Of a DNA stretch of 64,000 nt, positions 4,718-19,853 are shown in pieces. How positions within the stretch are numbered: the stretch's first letter is position 1; every line of letters begins with the position of its first letter. This DNA comes from Oikopleura dioica (lineage: Eukaryota; Animalia; Chordata). The stretch covers positions 2,294,001 to 2,358,000 of the forward strand of contig OU015567.1 of the NCBI GenBank assembly GCA_907165135.1. The letters are read 5' to 3'. A program made the position numbers and the translations under genes. The notes below the pieces were generated by a model. The model had not been told where the DNA came from. It was given only the letters and a program-made list of their open reading frames with translations, and did no database searches.

Positions 4718-6872
4718 GGACACTAAAAATATATTTTTTGAGAAAACTGAAAAGTTCTTGTTTCAAGGAACGAGTATGCTCAGCTGAAAGAGCATCCTCG
4801 ATTACGTATGCTGACTCAATCCGGTGGGGGGCTGAAAACGGAAATTTTCGAAAAAATGGGGTCGAAATCTCGAAAATGGTGGTTCTTATGACGCCAGTTT
4901 TGGGTACTTTTACTATCCCGTTTTAAAAGGTCAATAACTCATTTTGTAGCTCAGAGCCTGCGCTTCGCTGCAAGGTATAGATGAGCCGGTCAGTATCAGC
5001 CAAAGATTTTTATCAGGACCTGAGAAGGTAGGGTACTTTTTCGCGATAAACATGTCCCTTTCTTCTTTGATTTTGGCTAATTTCGTTCTATGTCAGGGTT
5101 GGCTGAATAATAATTGCTATTATTGCCACTTATTGCCACTTTCTGCCGGAGGACCTCCCGGAGGACCCTCTTACTGGAAGACCAACTGCTGGAAGACCAA
5201 TATAAAAAAAAATAAATAAATAGCCTTGCTTGGCCACCTATTGCCACATTTGGCCAATTGTGGTCGCTTTCTGCCGGAGGACCTCCCGGAGGACTCCCTC
5301 ACTGGAGGACCAACTGCTGGAAAACTTGTGGGGAATGAATCTGCCTCAGTGGGAGGAAGACACTCAAGCACATTAAACTCAGTCAGGGAGGGGGCCAAGC
5401 CGACCCGTAGGGGAGGCCATTCAAGCTCATTCGATTCAGTAAGGCAGGGGGCGAAGCCGACCCGATGGGGAGGCCGCGCCCGTCGACTTTATTCAGTCAG
5501 AGTCAGGGCGAAGCCGACCCAAAAGGGAGGCAACGCCCGTTTATTTTATTCAATCAGAGAAATTAGCAAGTCTTTTCTGGTTGGCTTTCGTCTTTTTAAA
5601 TTTCTGTTCCTTTTGGAATCTCGAACGTTGAATCTGTTGAAAACCTCCCAGATTATTCGGGAGACTGTAAGATTTGAAAAATCTCGAAATATTCGGTATC
5701 TTGAAATTTTGAAAGAGACAACCCTTTCGCGGACTCAGACTTTATCAAATAAACGGGCGTGGCCTCCTCTTCGGGTCGGCTTCGCCCTGACTCTGATTGA
5801 ATTATATGAACGGGCGTGGCCTCCCCTTTGGGTCGGCTTCGCCCTGACTCTGACTGAATAAAGTCGACGGGCGCGGCCTCCCCATCGGGTCGGCTTCGCC
5901 CTGACTCTGATTGAATAATATGAACGGGCGTGGCCTCCCCTTCGGGTCGGCTTCGCCCCCTGCCTTACTGAATCGAATGAGCTTGAATGGCCTCCCCTTC
6001 GGGTCGGCTTCGCCCCTACCTTACTGAATCGAATGAGCTTGAATGGCCTCCCCTACGGGTCGGCTTGGCCCCCTCCCTGACTGAGTTTAATGTGCTTGAG
6101 TGTCTTCCTCCCACTGAGGCAGATTTATTCCCCACAAGTTTTCCAGCAGTTGGTCCTCCAGTGAAGGAGTCATCCGGGAGGTCCTCCGGCAATAAGCGGC
6201 CGAAATTGTCCAAAGGTGGCAACTTGTGGCCAAGCGAGGTTATTTATTCATTTTTTTTATATTGGTCTTCCAGCAGTTGGTCTTCCAGTAAAGGAGTCCT
6301 CCGGGAGGTCCTCCGGCAGAAAGCGACCACAATTGGCCAAATGTGGCAATAGGTGGCCAAGCAAGGCTATTTATTTATTTTTTTTTATATTGGTCTTCCA
6401 GCAGTTGGTCTTCCAGTAAGAGGGTCCTCCGGGAGGTCCTCCGGCAGAAAGTGGCAATAAGTGGCAATAATAACAATTATTATTCAGCCAACCCTGACAT
6501 AGAACGAAATTAGCCAAAATCAAAGAAGAAAGGGACATGTTTATCGCGAAAAAGTACCCTACCTTCTCAGGTCCTGATAAAAATCTTTGGCTGATACTGA
6601 CCGGCTCATCTATACCTTGCAGCGAAGCGCAGGCTCTGAGCTACAAAATGAGTTATTGACCTTTTAAAACGGGAAAGTAAAAGTACCCAAAACTTGCGTC
6701 ATAAGAACCACCATTTTCGAGATTTCGACCCCATTTTTTCGAAAATTTCCGTTTTCAGCCCCCCACCGGATTGAGCCAGCATACGTAATCGAGGATGCTC
6801 TTTCAGCTGAGCATACTCGTTCCTTGAAACAAGAACTTTTCAGTTTTCTCAAAAAATATATTTTTAGTGTCC
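4718..6872. mobile_element. Foldback-type non-autonomous DNA transposon (2155 bp) with very long modular TIRs and 3-bp CTA target duplication
   Basis: Termini GGACACTAAAAAT...ATTTTTAGTGTCC; CTA at 4715-4717 and 6873-6875; arms of about 830 and 1130 bp are reverse complements built from ~120-bp and ~58-60-bp subrepeats with unequal copy number; ~200-bp spacer (about 5548-5746); no transposase ORF. Confidence 0.85.
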
Positions 6873-14489: not shown

Positions 14490-15463
14490 TTAAGCACATG
14501 GTTTGTTTTCAACCCAAACTGGATCAGATCGGTCGCAAGTCCAAATGTTTCGTCGGTTTCCAGTTCGGTTTCCGCTTGTGCAAGTGGCAATGCACTTCTT
14601 GTTTCCATTGGCTTTGGTTCGGCATTCGACTTCAGAGCCTGCTTGGAAAACTGGCTGGGCATCGAGGTGGTCGCACTCGTTCTTGCATTTGAACTGGACG
14701 GTGGAGTATTTGGTGGTTCCTCGGCAGGGATCGCCGACCATTCCGTTGTTGAGTTTGATAGAGCAGGCTCGTTTGCCGTTGCATCGGTCGGACATGAAAT
14801 CAGTCGCATCTCGGTTGCAGCCTCCATCGGGAACGAGGTAGTGTTTGTGAGAAGAGCCGTTGGGGTTGCAAACGTCCTGCTCTTCTCGACCGTACCAGGC
14901 GTCAACGATTTCGAGGACCTTGCCGGCGTCGCAGCTGATTCGTCGGTCATTGTTTCCTTGGTGGGAGTGCTCGCAAGAGATGGATTCTTTGACTGCATCT
15001 TCGACTCCCTCAGAGGATTCGCATTTGTAGAGGACCTCGGTGAACTTGGTGGTTCCGACGCAGGGATCCTTGACTGAAAATTACCGTAAGCCATGTCTCT
15101 TATCAAAAAATCCGTATTCTTAATATTGGTGCTGGAAGAATTTCACTTACTTTCTCTGTTGTTGGCATTGTAGTTGCAAGATCGTTTGCCATCGCAATCA
15201 GCAGCAGCGTGCTCGGTCACATCCAAGGAGCATTCTGGCCAGTTTCCGTAGGCGTTGCCACCGTGACAGGTATCAGCGTCGTTTCGACCGTATGTTGCGC
15301 CCATGACCCTGATGACTTTGTTCTTGGGGCAGGAGGCGCCGCCTTCGTTGGTACCGGTGGTGGCGAGGTGGTTGTGCTCGCAGTTGATGAATGACTGAGT
15401 CATGAATCGCTCGACAGCTTGGTCAGCGGAAGCAGCGACGAGGAGGGAAGTAAAAAGCTTCAT
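14490..15463 (-). CDS. Secreted tandem SUEL/rhamnose-binding-type galactose lectin with C-terminal Cys-rich domain
   Basis: Signal MKLFTSLLVAASA; two domains with (A)xYGR and DPCxGTxK(F/Y) motifs (ATYGR..DPCVGTTKF; AWYGR..DPCRGTTKY); one intron. Confidence 0.9.
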
Positions 15464-15875
15464 TCTTTTTATTATATTTTTTATCGTTGTATTCACGATT
15501 AGATGAATAACCTCGGATTCGCGTTCTTTTTAAGGGAAAGAGGTCAACTTCGCGAACGCGAGGTGGTGCTGGGGATGTGGCCAGGAGATAACAAGCGCCC
15601 GGGCGATGAGGGCGCTAGTACTCTACTTTTCACGATTTTGCATTGTTGTGACCTCGTTAGCGCGGGCACTGGGTTAACCGCTGGAGCTCGTTTAAGCGGT
15701 TCGAAAATATGCGATTTAGGCTTTAAATTTTGTCTCAGATTTAGCTGTTCGTGGACAACTTTATTTTAAGTATTGCATCTATTCACGTACTAGAAGATAT
15801 CCGTAGAGCATGAAAAGTAAGTGTTAGAATAAATTGGAAATGAAACCGATCATGTATATGAGTAACATAATGTCA

Positions 15876-18800
15876 CTAACCGCCATCAGTTGTCGTTGAG
15901 GTCGTTGAGGAAATTGTCGTTGAGGCCGTTGATGTTTTTGTTGTTGATGGTGTTGTTGATGTTGGTGTCGAATAGCACCAATTCTGCCATGATTTCTTTT
16001 TACCAAAAATTTTTAAGGGATGATTGTTATTTTCTGTTACGCACTCATTTGTAGACGCTGTCCTAAATTGCTCCGTTAATGTTGTTCTTAATTACAAAAA
16101 AATAGTAACCATGATGCGCTTGTAGAAGTAAACAGAGTAATTCCATCATTTGGCTAAAGTTTGGCTTTATAGCGCACTTTCCAACTTCCGTATATCGTCG
16201 GAAAAATTGTCGAGTTTTCGTATGCATCATCTTCTTAAAAATTATTGTTAACCCAGGCCCATCCTTCAGGGCCTGCCTCGAATCGTTGATTTTGGGATTC
16301 GATCCATGTTCCATTTCGATTGCGTCGTATCAAGATTGAATAATTTCCTTCAAGGCAATAATAAGTACTTAAATTCAACTCTTTCCCTAAAAATTGGTAC
16401 TTCTAGCTCCCAAAATTTTTGGACATTATCATTTTCTGCAGGATCGTAAATATATGAGAGGTTAGAGCTGCTACAGTATTGATTCGACATTGCCCATTTG
16501 AAAGTGCTATCAATAATCGCTCCATATATAAACTGATTTCTATTACAGTTTCCTGAGCAAGATCGCTGGTAGATTGGATATGACTGGTGACAAGAAGTAA
16601 CATCAACACCGGTTTCATTATTATCAACTCAACGAATAAAAAATCCAGAGCCAAAGCCAGCTTCGTCATCGCCCTGATCGAGTCCGATAGTCAAAGTCCT
16701 CGGCCAATCTCCTTCCGGCAATTGATTGTAAATTCCAGTAAAATTGCTCTCATCCAAACAGTTATTTTCAGTGACCCACAGTTATCTGGATAGCAATCGT
16801 ATCCATTAGTTGTTGTCTTGTAATTCGGGGTTGGAGGATATTCCATTGTGTTCAAATTTTCTGGCTGAATTTCCCAAAAAAGGCTTCGATCGTGTGTTCT
16901 AGAGGAGGGATGATTGCCAGAAAGTCTTGTATAATTTGAGCTTAAAAATGAAAAAACTGAATTCCCTGTCCTGTAAAAACCATTAAAGCAAGGTCCGTAA
17001 ATTGAGGGAAAAGGCGAAGATGGATCCATATAAACTTCATCAGAAGTCATCTTGTCCTTCAAAAGCATCCACCTTCCAGTCTCGATTTGAAAGCTGAAGT
17101 ACCAGTCGCCCTCCTCTCCATGACGAACATAAGCGTCCGGTCCCGGTTCGAAGAATTGATTCTGCAAGTACTCTCGATACGGGACCTGATCATTGTACCG
17201 AGTCATCATTGGCCGCTCCACATCCCAAAAATTGTCAGGCTGATTATTGTATCCCCAGTAAGCGTATTGAACCTCATCTTCATATCCAAACGCGCAAAGC
17301 TTCGGACCAAACGCCGAATTTTGTAACTCATCATCGTCTTACACCGGATAGATAAAATTGCGATCATTGAAAATGCTCTCGTAGCTTGGTATTCCTAGGA
17401 CGTGAGAATCCCAGCAAAATTCAGGATTACCCCAGTCCACTGTTGAGTGATATTTGGCGACAAAGGTTTGGAACCTAAAGCCTGAATGAGCATAACCGTC
17501 GTATGTAGAAATTGTAAGCGTTTTCGGGTATGTTCCGTTTTGGTGAGGAATTTTATGATATTCTCCAGTCCAATCGTAGGCGTCATAGTCGCCATTGCTT
17601 GAAATATGGATACTGTCATAGTTGCAGGTATGCAGCGGCATCGTTATGTTATCCCAAGAATCATAAAATGTAGTTGTTGTGGTCGTTGTCGTGGTTGTTG
17701 TTGACGTCGTTGTTGTTTGAGGACTGAAGTCTTGGTAGTAGAAATTTTTAAGCTGGTATTTTGCTGCATCATGAAACGGATTCGACACATAAACTTTCAG
17801 CGGGCCAGAGGTATACGCTTGCTGGATACGAGCCCACTGCTTTTTGAATTCCATCAATTGTTACTTCATAATGTAGAGTTTCATTAACTGGCGTGACTTC
17901 AAGAACATATGTGCTCCATTGTCCTTCAGTGCACATATGATTAATGTCTTTTGCATGCCAACCAGGGTTGCTTGGATCATCGATGTTGATAAGAAATGTA
18001 TTTCTGTTAAAGGGTTGAAAAAAAAACTGAGTTAAAAAAAGTCTCGTTAATCTCTTTGATTTGCCCACCCTAGCCTGTGTGGATGTCGGAGCATGGCAAA
18101 AGTCCTATCACCCGGTTTTCCCCAGTTGCCGCCAGGTGTGACGTGAAAAATATTCACATAGTCGGCAAGAGGAACATCCATTGTATGATTACAAAATGAT
18201 TCGGCTTCATTATATCCAAAAGCTTCATTTTATCCAAAGCTTCATTGTATCCAAATACTTCATTTGATCCAAAATTTTTTTTGGATAAAATGAAGCAATT
18301 GGGTCAAATGATGCTTTTGGATATAATGAAGCCCGATTTCCAAAAACTTCAGAAATTGGATAAAATGAAGCCTTTGTATAAAATGAAGTCATTGGATAGG
18401 ATGAAGCCACTGTTTTTCGAATCAAAAAAGTGGATAAAATGAATCAAATGGATAAAATGAAGCCGTGTTTTTCAAAGAGTAAATAACAAAGCTCGACTGG
18501 TCTTTGCTTTGAAATACTTCTCGACCCCCCTCTCAGAAATTTTTTCGAAAATTTTTCTTTGTAAATTCTTTTGAGATTCATTTTGAACAATAATAATGAA
18601 TCATCCATCATGAGTTCATTATTAAGAATTTACCAAGAGGCGTCGGCCGCCCTTTTTAAAGCTCGGGTCGGGTCACTTTAAAATGGCTAGAATTATGGTC
18701 GGGTCGGGTCTTGTGGAGTCGGCCATTTTTGTAAGAAGGATATTTATAAGTAGGATATAAAATCCTACATTTTGCTTGTTCAAAAACCCACGAACCTAGT

Positions 18801-19853
18801 CATCAACCCTTTTTCTTTACTGCCCCAAAATTTTTACTATTTAAAAACTCACCAGCCTAGTCATCACGAACCGAGTCATCAACCCATTTTCCTTACTGCC
18901 CCAAAATATAGCCCGATTTCAATACTCTGGCAGAACCCACCACGAACCTAGTCACACGAACCTAGTCCTCACAAACTTAGTCGTCATTCCCCGAAAGTGG
19001 TCAACTTCATGTTAGAATCGACACTGTAAATAATTTTCCCAGGTCGGGGTCGGTTGGTTTATGTTCGCTTGGTCGGTTTGAGATTGTTTATCACGAAAAT
19101 TCAAAAAATTTGCTGCAAAAATAATTTTTAATCATGGGGTGTTTCTTTGAAAAAGCCATTTATTTGATCGGTCTCTGAGACAGTTTATCGAAATTCATAT
19201 TCTCAGAAATAATGCTTCCGAAGCTTCATTTCATCCAAATAAGCACATGAGAAAAAAATTGTCTTCATTTTATCCAGAGGCTTCATTTTATCCGAGGCAT
19301 CATTCTATCCAAAGCATCATTTTATCCAAAAGCTTCATCTTATACAAAGCTTCATTTAATCCAATGACTTCATTTTATCCAATTTCCGAATTTTTTGAAA
19401 ATTGGGCTTCATTTTATCCAAAAGCATCATTTGATCCAATTGCTTCATTATATCCAAAAAAATATTTGGATCAAATGAAGTATTTGGATACAATGAAGCT
19501 TTGGATAAAATGAAGCTTCTGGATATAATGAAGCCAAATCCACCCGGTTTTCCCCAGTTGCCGCCAGGTGTGACGTGAAAAATATTCACATAGTCGGCAA
19601 GAGGAACATCCATTGTATGATTACAAAATACGTCGATTGAAAATTTATAATGCGGAGATGCATTAATAGTCTTCAAATGCCGATTTGGAATCGGATATGA
19701 CGGAAACTTGTTGAGAAACATCGTACATGATTCTAGCTCTAGATAAGTACATGGGTCTGCAAAACTGCCTGCAAAACGTTCATTATTTTCTGAAACTCTT
19801 TCGCCGAGCACAAGTTGAAAAATAAGCCACAAAAATGATCGAAAAAAGGACAT
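15876..19853 (-). CDS. Secreted multidomain protein with a ConA/LamG-like domain and Thr-rich mucin tracts; disrupted by an insertion and a frameshift
   Basis: Signal MSFFRSFLWLIFQLVLG; NIFHVTPGGNWGKPGDR...LKVYVSNPF domain; poly-Thr at about 17670-17720 and 15880-15970; insertion at 18198-19540 and a frameshift near 17815-17850. The 3' exons are approximate. Confidence 0.6.
18109..18197. repeat. 89-bp perfect direct repeat, copy 1 (coding exon sequence)
   Basis: Identical to 19541-19629; abuts the left TIR of the element. Confidence 0.95.
18198..19540. mobile_element. Non-autonomous TIR element (1343 bp) with ~210-bp TIRs built from ~18-bp TTCATTTTATCCAAA-type modules
   Basis: Termini GATTCGGCTTCATTATATCC and GGATATAATGAAGCCAAATC (1 mismatch); inverted similarity extends about 210 bp; internal CACGAACCTAGTC repeats; no transposase. 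Confidence 0.8.
19541..19629. repeat. 89-bp perfect direct repeat, copy 2
   Basis: Identical to 18109-18197; abuts the right TIR. Confidence 0.95.

Follow-up and report, generated by a model that had tools for sequence, protein, structure and literature searches.

A 64,000-nt stretch of Oikopleura dioica DNA, hereafter the window, carries an inverted-repeat element of 1343 bp (18198-19540) flanked by identical direct repeats of 89 bp, and a duplication of this length is found throughout the family to which the element belongs. The insertion is recent and probably represents a low-copy, non-autonomous O. dioica transposon, with the long duplication arising from strand transfer at points 89 bp apart by a transposase acting in trans. 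Eukaryotic cut-and-paste superfamilies are known to duplicate 2-11 bp of their target, and 89 bp is about ten times longer than in any inverted-repeat transposon that we found described. The literature searched contained no inverted-repeat transposon with a long duplication of fixed length, and no mention of this family. With inverted termini that have common terminal nucleotides, a family-specific target duplication and an empty site, the element shows two of the three characters considered for Class II cut-and-paste transposons; the third, a transposase encoded by an autonomous member, was not found in this assembly.

The repeats abut the element without a spacer and are 100% identical, as claimed in an earlier reading of the locus made from its letters alone (the sequence-only reading). 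The duplication is exactly 89 bp, as the bases beyond either repeat do not prolong the match, and the 89-mer is present twice in the 64.3-Mb genome, both times at this locus. The duplicated segment belongs to coding sequence: one copy of it is read through in a protein fragment with 85% identity (P0001) and in the corresponding DNA contig (L061), and the minus strand of the segment encodes the peptide quoted in the earlier reading plus one extra N-terminal residue (F). L061, a related ENA metagenome contig, has the orthologous host exon with a single 89-bp copy and no element, and is thus an empty site; no allelic empty site was found inside the O. dioica assembly itself. Each insertion creates an 89-bp direct repeat, from which exact reversion by recombination could follow, and the two repeats in the window are inferred to be a substrate for such a deletion. 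After excision, the scar would be a tandem duplication of 89 bp, and no such scar was found in the window.

Table 1. Features of the insertion and its host gene, in window coordinates.
Feature	Position	Strand	Remarks
Host exon 2, first part (rest of ~190-aa repeat domain)	17820..18003	-	P0003 residues 285-349 align to 18008-17820
Predicted intron 1, 65 nt, GT-AG	18004..18068	-	Predicted from reading frame and homology only
Host exon 1, last 40 nt (...DRTFAMLRHPHRLG), past the downstream duplication copy	18069..18108	-	Contiguous with the 89 bp in P0001 and L061
Target-site duplication, low-coordinate copy (downstream in gene orientation)	18109..18197		89/89 identical to 19541-19629
Non-autonomous inverted-repeat (foldback-type) DNA transposon	18198..19540		1343 bp, without coding capacity
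Left terminal inverted repeat	18198..18388	+	Array of 17-18-bp units (GCTTCATTTTATCCAAA) in both orientations; period 18
Left arm core, 141-nt near-perfect hairpin	18198..18338	+	DNA fold -45 kcal/mol, z = -12.5
Piece of unrelated high-copy ~200-bp repeat inside element	18787..18991		Sequence matches
Right terminal inverted repeat	19350..19540	-	Same 17-18-bp unit array (GCTTCATTTTATCCAAA) as left
Right arm core, 141-nt hairpin	19400..19540	-	-40.8 kcal/mol, z = -10.2; inner pseudo-terminus 19400-19419
Target-site duplication, high-coordinate copy (upstream in gene orientation)	19541..19629		Identical to 18109-18197
Host exon 1, 5' part	19541..19853	-	ATG at 19853; signal-peptide-like start; ends in upstream duplication copy

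The inverted arms of the element are 191 nt long and 92% complementary, and run up to the 89-bp repeats. Its termini are GATTCGGCTTCATTATATCC and GATTTGGCTTCATTATATCC; a terminus search allowing up to three mismatches gave four matches, with 0.01 expected by chance, and the two exact ones are the real termini. In the left core, an inner pseudo-terminus (AATCGGGCTTCAT...) at 18319-18338 mirrors the true terminus, and this 141-nt layout with its inner pseudo-terminus recurs in other family copies. The only ORFs in the element are spurious ones spanning the repeat arrays. At least five other loci match 250-550 bp of each end with 80-93% identity, while the interiors are unrelated. The high-copy repeat piece (element positions 590-794) has matches of 73-93% identity in more than 100 other places.

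Flanking duplications at other copies had been named in the sequence-only reading as the check on its claim, and all four other two-ended copies, at unrelated loci, carry the same ~89-bp duplication. The sample is small, with only five two-ended copies including that of the window. The duplication is 89/89 identical at L031 and 88/89 at L034; at L038, an old copy, it is 89 nt with ~80/89 identical (about 90%), and at L033 it is 85 versus 87 nt, the length of a T-run being the sole difference. Flanks are unrelated from locus to locus. A further copy, L032, lacks its final 11 bp and retains 54-64 nt of flanking duplication, which fits a junction deletion. L038 resembles the other copies in only ~20 nt at each tip but is still flanked by an 89-bp duplication; thus, the duplication length follows whatever reads the tips. 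The family ends all begin at the identical nucleotide in the copies compared, and the genome has 24 occurrences of the 13-nt terminus but only 0-1 of a reversed control. No clear target motif was seen across 10 half-sites, the only preference being a weak one for T at position -1 (7 of 10). Judging by the flawless duplications of two copies, the family appears to have been active recently, so that a search of other O. dioica haplotypes should turn up the enzyme.

Of the other explanations, the one that survives best, although still unlikely, is a non-DDE machine nicking two distant points, such as a retrotransposon endonuclease of the R9/Dualen type or, at the terminal hairpins, a Rep/HUH nickase. 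The only long eukaryotic duplications reported are those of non-LTR retrotransposons (PMC9977147), and the 141-nt hairpins recall hairpin-ended replicons. However, each copy has complete, symmetric ends of identical sequence, and there is neither poly(A) nor site specificity nor a 3' bias in truncation. Dualen duplications moreover vary in length, and R9 is restricted to a single rDNA target. Independent repair accidents, in which gap repair or template switching gave a short-stagger transposon its long duplications by chance, are very improbable, as accidents would scatter in length, whereas four of the five measurable insertions have exactly 89 bp and the fifth 85-87 bp, and none has a short duplication. 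A duplication of ~89 bp recurs in all the other two-ended copies and thus characterises the family, rather than being a one-off. Thus, of the origins offered in the sequence-only reading, staggered nicks gain support from the copy survey, and one-off repair and template switching are rejected.

It is hardly credible that the assembler or polisher doubled 89 bp beside hairpin-rich inserts. The assembly (OKI2018_I69) was built with Canu from 221x Nanopore reads and polished with Racon and Pilon, with haplotypes merged by software, and such merging, the difficulty of sequencing foldback DNA and the two perfect duplications could all point to an artefact. However, three duplications have diverged (by one mismatch, a T-run indel and ~10%), which is not expected from an artefact, and the older duplications are therefore real DNA. 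The reads are also long (minimum 1 kb, at the above depth), and at no locus do the duplication boundaries depart from the exact ends of the element. Short duplications, or none, were seen at other inverted-repeat elements of this assembly (3 bp for a foldback element at 4718-6872, and none of 60-129 bp at eight MULE loci).

No family copy found in the assembly encodes a transposase. Searches for an autonomous copy with whole-element DNA, a 20-nt terminus (two mismatches) and a 15-nt unit motif found ~9 loci, none coding, and no clusters of the unit motif were seen outside known family loci; 11 exact 13-nt solo termini lie outside the set examined for a coding copy. L034 reaches 4.9 kb, owing its length only to an unrelated 1.07-kb high-copy repeat that it carries. 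There are no transposase-like ORFs in the interiors of L031, L032 and L033, and that of L038 has no relatives apart from a 120-bp high-copy repeat. Domain searches covered MULE, IS4-type DDE and Cas1, with HUH and reverse transcriptase not among them. The MULE domain (PF10551) was found at eight loci, none with the termini of this family, and no inverted-repeat pair with a 60-129-bp duplication was found there. Neither the IS4-type DDE domain (PF01609) nor the Cas1 domain (PF01867) was detectable in the 64.3-Mb assembly. A metagenome scan gave two arm fragments only (L051 and L052), without both ends, and neither a scan of viral contigs nor a word search based on the spurious ORF of the arms gave a match. 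The long duplication could be attributed to an enzyme of prokaryotic origin resembling that of casposons or IS1634, as casposases duplicate 14-15 bp. IS1634 and IS1549 duplicate 8-514 bp (PMC2266710), but as both domains are undetectable and IS1634-type lengths vary while that of the O. dioica family is fixed, such a source can be set aside almost entirely.

Under the preferred reading, that of 89-bp-spaced strand transfer, a transposase supplied in trans would recognise the family ends, which have precise inverted termini (GATTYGGCTTCAT...), 17-18-bp unit arrays and an outermost 141 nt predicted to fold as a hairpin. It would join the 3' ends of the element to opposite target strands at points exactly 89 bp apart, and host polymerases would then duplicate the 89 bp by strand-displacing synthesis starting at both free 3' ends of the target, leaving the element between two copies of the target. 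The staggered strand transfer and the repair synthesis are both inferred, as are the existence and nature of the rigid ruler that such a long, exact spacing would need. The likeliest ruler would be a large transposase assembly, or a nucleosome serving as platform, with ~8.5 helical turns between the active sites. As 89 is 8 turns of 10.5 bp plus 5, both attack points would face one side of the helix, as with classical 5-bp staggers. The target could be wrapped round the transposase assembly, or two adjacent gyres of one nucleosome could be attacked; these models rest on geometry only. More tentatively, and with the chances a little short of even, the family may belong to an undescribed eukaryotic cut-and-paste superfamily, or to a radically modified lineage within a known superfamily, whose integration complex measures 89 bp of target.

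The host is a minus-strand gene for a secreted repeat-domain protein, and the insertion lies within its first coding exon. Residues 1-90 of P0001 align to the 5' part of exon 1 with ~85% identity. The GT donor of the exon (18068/18067) is kept in L061, and the alignments of P0003 and P0008 pick up again at 18003 (NTFLINIDDP...). Host-gene searches were made with single exons only, not with a joined spliced model, and a Pfam search of the host exons found no domain. In the absence of RNA data, the element most likely inactivates the allele. The sequence-only reading had called the allele probably null, which is reasonable because the host frame enters the element, stays open for 61 codons and then meets a stop (19356-19358). 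It had also held clean splicing-out to be unlikely. The AG dinucleotide is absent from the minus (coding) strand of the duplicated segment, as it had noted, and exact removal with an AG acceptor is indeed impossible; however, a near-exact GT-AG pair is available, with a donor at 19624 and an acceptor at 18205, and splicing between them would keep the frame and take out almost the whole insert, with four residues added. Null status is therefore conditional on RNA data.

The way in which a transposase or integrase grips its target is read from the duplication length, which is also a main character in the classification of DNA transposons. A fixed 89 bp implies widely separated active sites, at the spacing given above, and a repair step that displaces an 89-bp duplex, and neither has a described precedent in inverted-repeat transposons. 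If a complex measuring 89 bp does exist, it would represent a new integration geometry for these elements. Standard transposon finders cap the duplication length, and such families are thus missed. Insertions into exons duplicate ~30 codons.

Casposons duplicate 14-15 bp, and the CRISPR Cas1-Cas2 repeat is 28-37 bp. In both systems a protein ruler holds the integrase active sites apart, so that a long stretch is duplicated, as is proposed here; however, both are prokaryotic and the O. dioica duplication is 3-6 times longer. Membership of the casposons, defined by the Cas1 integrase and the short duplication, is not met, as PF01867 is absent and the duplication is 89 bp. The family is likewise excluded from hAT (8-bp duplication, YARNG-type termini) by its GATTYGG termini and its 89 bp, and from Mutator/MULE (8-11 bp) by the duplication and the lack of a MULE-domain transposase between matching termini. 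Foldback (FB) elements and MULEs are nevertheless alike in having long inverted ends of short tandem units, heterogeneous or captured interiors, and non-autonomous copies that depend on a distant or unidentified transposase. They have the longest duplications among eukaryotic cut-and-paste elements, but these "long" duplications are 9-10 bp (PMC8277862), against 89 bp in the O. dioica family. Thus, of the FB characters, the tandem-unit arms are met and the duplication is not.

In the bacterial IS1634 and IS1549, the transposase generates direct repeats tens to hundreds of bp long, by a mechanism on which there is no agreement (PMC2266710). These repeats vary in length from copy to copy, and belong to autonomous prokaryotic elements; with PF01609 absent from this genome and the O. 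dioica repeats fixed in length, membership is not met. In the KolobokP composite-like transposons, each end likewise forms a small unit bearing short inverted termini, and such units are also found solo (PMC9587614). However, the KolobokP ends are 450-660-bp direct repeats that enclose a transposase gene, whereas the O. dioica family has inverted 141-nt hairpin ends and no gene. Exceptionally long target duplications are known in eukaryotes from rotifer R9 (126 bp) and Chlamydomonas Dualen-4b (median ~900 bp). These elements are RNA-mediated and without inverted termini, R9 using its one rDNA site and Dualen giving variable lengths. The characters of an element mobilised by a non-LTR machinery (recognition of the 3' end alone, frequent 5' truncation, no inverted termini, and a duplication that is variable or site-specific) are not met, and the O. 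dioica family differs from both in combining symmetric, complete ends with diverse targets and a fixed duplication length.

The Oikopleura dioica assembly (19 pieces of up to 17.09 Mb, 64,281,565 bp in total), in which the window occupies C5:2294001-2358000, was searched with three queries: the full element, its 20-nt terminus and the unit motif. The published OKI2018_I69 assembly comprises 64.3 Mbp in 19 scaffolds, the longest 17.1 Mbp, and was built by Canu at 221x Nanopore coverage and polished with Racon and Pilon, with haplotypes merged (PMC8008620). The element family has about nine loci, five with both termini (see table), and the start nucleotide is identical in every element. The duplicated sequences flanking different copies are unrelated to each other. 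In the window copy, L031, L034 and L038 the 89-bp length is exact, because the adjoining bases do not extend the repeat. L038 has only about 20 nt per tip in common with the rest of the family, yet carries an 89-bp duplication; therefore, duplication length follows whatever recognises the tips. A sixth copy, L032, lacks its final 11 bp and retains 54-64 nt of flanking duplication, which is consistent with a deletion across the junction. T is found at -1 in seven of 10 half-sites (too few to rely on) and at +1 in none, and target preference looks weak from these sequences. L038 also contains a repeat with >50 copies (82-95% identity), which could be a MITE or SINE.

Duplications of ~89 bp at independent loci support the widely staggered cuts that the sequence-only reading had put forward for the window copy, and extend them to the whole family. 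Misassembly, which would have refuted that reading, is ruled out, as divergence has accumulated in the older duplications (1 mismatch, an indel, or about 10%) and the assembly comes from long reads. Other inverted-repeat elements of the same assembly, with short duplications or none, also speak against it: a foldback element in the window, serving as internal control, has perfect 20-nt tips (GGACACTAAAAATAT...) and a duplication of only 3 bp (CTA), and no duplication of 60-129 bp was found at the 8 MULE loci checked. A one-off event of gap repair or template switching, the alternatives offered earlier, is contradicted by the equal length at independent loci.

An empty site is seen in a contig that encodes a relative of the host protein. 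A query with exon 1 of the host gene, taken as a single exon, recovered P0001, a 106-residue fragment with 85% identity. Two alignments of its residues 60-90 are found in the window, one per 89-bp copy, and beyond residue 90 it runs straight into the sequence after the downstream copy. L061, the 555-bp contig encoding P0001 (ENA metagenome assembly), aligns in the order upstream exon part, one 89-bp copy and exon remainder on the downstream side, with the element absent. Thus, one copy is the ancestral state, and the duplication came with the insertion.

The window element has the tips GATTCGGCTTCATTATATCC and GATTTGGCTTCATTATATCC; a search for the tip motif with up to 3 mismatches gave 4 matches against 0.01 expected, and both exact ones are the element termini. 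Its arms consist of a 17-18-bp unit (GCTTCATTTTATCCAAA) arrayed in both orientations. The arm hairpins, each ending on the inner side in a pseudo-terminus, a mirror of the true one, have DNA folds of -45 (left) and -40.8 (right) kcal/mol, with z-scores of -12.5 and -10.2, respectively. No credible ORF was found in the interior, part of which is a piece of an unrelated repeat. This repeat, found in >100 other places (for example, C4:756277-759225), has internal 76-90-bp sub-repeats (CCACGAACCTAGTCA...) and usually occurs in clusters that mix both orientations.

Locations of element copies, repeats and host gene features (window positions unless prefixed)
Feature	Location	Size or strand	Remarks
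Window copy	C5:2312198-2313540	1343 bp	duplication 89/89 identical
L031	C4:13067235-13069069	1835 bp	duplication 89/89 identical
L034	C5:3981159-3986067	4909 bp	duplication 88/89 identical
L038	C4:442489-442959	471 bp	duplication 89 nt, about 80/89 identical
L033	C4:5623156-5624743	1588 bp	duplication 85 vs 87 nt, T-run the sole difference
Direct repeat	18109-18197 and 19541-19629	89 nt	perfect; repeat search of window
Inverted arms	18198-18388 and 19350-19540	191 nt	92% complementary; directly inside direct repeats
Near-perfect hairpins	18198-18338 and 19400-19540	141 nt	outermost part of each arm
Unrelated repeat in window element	18787-18991	~200 bp
Foldback element	4718-6872
Repeat in L038	L038:1104-1225 (C4:442592-442713)	~120 bp
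Nested element in L034	L034:2890-3965 (C5:3983048-3984123)	~1.07 kb
Terminus matches outside known copies	C1:674825, C1:2415103, C1:9764186, C1:10393428, C1:10489704
Terminus matches outside known copies	C4:1571748, C4:8775015, C4:12371670
Terminus matches outside known copies	C5:4404338, C5:8059384, C5:10781428
Arm fragments, marine contigs	L051:321-455, L052:331-354
Host gene start	ATG 19853	minus	then signal-peptide-like start
Exon 1 query	19542-19853	minus
Exon 1 end, intact state	18069	minus	reading frame and alignment to relatives only
Intron 1, predicted	18068-18004	65 nt, minus	GT-AG; reading frame and alignment to relatives only
Exon 2 start, predicted	18003	minus	reading frame and alignment to relatives only
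Host protein family region	17339-19853	minus
Lectin-domain ORF	15146-15496	minus

The insertion lies 40 nt ahead of the end of exon 1, the donor GT of which is conserved in L061. The reading frame enters the element for 61 codons before a stop, giving a 165-residue product. Clean splicing-out had been judged unlikely for want of an AG, and this is borne out: the coding strand of the 89-bp segment has none, so an intron ending in AG cannot exactly remove the element plus one repeat copy. One GT-AG pair (donor 19624, acceptor 18205) would keep the message in frame and add four residues, although its use is hypothetical. The host protein family (including relatives P0002-P0016) is secreted, with ~190-residue cysteine-containing repeats (DPC...GDR.F...RNFFYQ) for which there is no Pfam model; the sole domain hint comes from a relative with 6 repeats in 1302 residues, which scores below threshold against the ConA-like family PF06439. 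Further along the minus strand, an ORF carries a SUEL-type galactose/rhamnose-binding lectin domain (PF02140, E = 2e-9); it could belong to the host gene as a further exon downstream, or to a neighbouring gene.

With misassembly and one-off repair excluded, the reading left is an integration reaction in which the two element ends are joined to the target at points 89 bp apart on opposite strands, after which repair synthesis copies the intervening stretch. The exact spacing argues, by inference, for a rigid ruler. On geometric grounds, 89 bp, being 8 turns of 10.5 bp and a further 5 bp, would place both attacked phosphates on one face of the helix, as happens with 5-bp staggers; it is also near one superhelical turn of nucleosomal DNA. 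The enzyme responsible is unidentified. None of the known family copies encodes protein, the length of L034 being due only to a nested high-copy repeat. The ~370-bp core of this nested element forms long overlapping tandem arrays elsewhere (for example, C1:9744381-9747887). The MULE-domain loci of the assembly show no connection to the family, and IS4-type DDE and Cas1 domains are absent in a domain search of the whole assembly. The 13-nt terminus GATTYGGCTTCAT has 24 exact genome matches, against 0-1 for a reversed-pattern control, and 11 of the 24 lie outside known copies. Two copies have flawless duplications despite 7-20% divergence among family members; therefore, a transposase source was recently active, possible locations being the haplotype that was merged away, other populations or an immobile gene. 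Fragments of the unit array and hairpin arm are found in two JGI marine metagenome contigs, L051 (Ga0115008_10315832) and L052 (Ga0209092_10083058); the family or a relative is therefore present in other larvacean populations. Neither contig carries both element ends. The family could be a new superfamily, but because the enzyme is unidentified this status is withheld, and it is treated as a variant of a known transposon type.

In the DNA transposon literature searched, 9-10 bp is counted as a long duplication. No inverted-repeat transposon with a long duplication of fixed length, and no description of this element family, was found in that literature, most subscription journals and Repbase being outside its scope. 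That a protein ruler can fix a long stagger is shown by casposon and CRISPR integrases, although Cas1, the enzyme of both, is absent from the O. dioica assembly. The bacterial IS1634 and IS1549 also make long duplications, of variable length (8-514 bp) and without a mechanistic model. Among retrotransposons, R9 has a duplication of 126 bp, but at a single rDNA site, whereas that of Dualen-4b is variable, with a median of about 900 bp.
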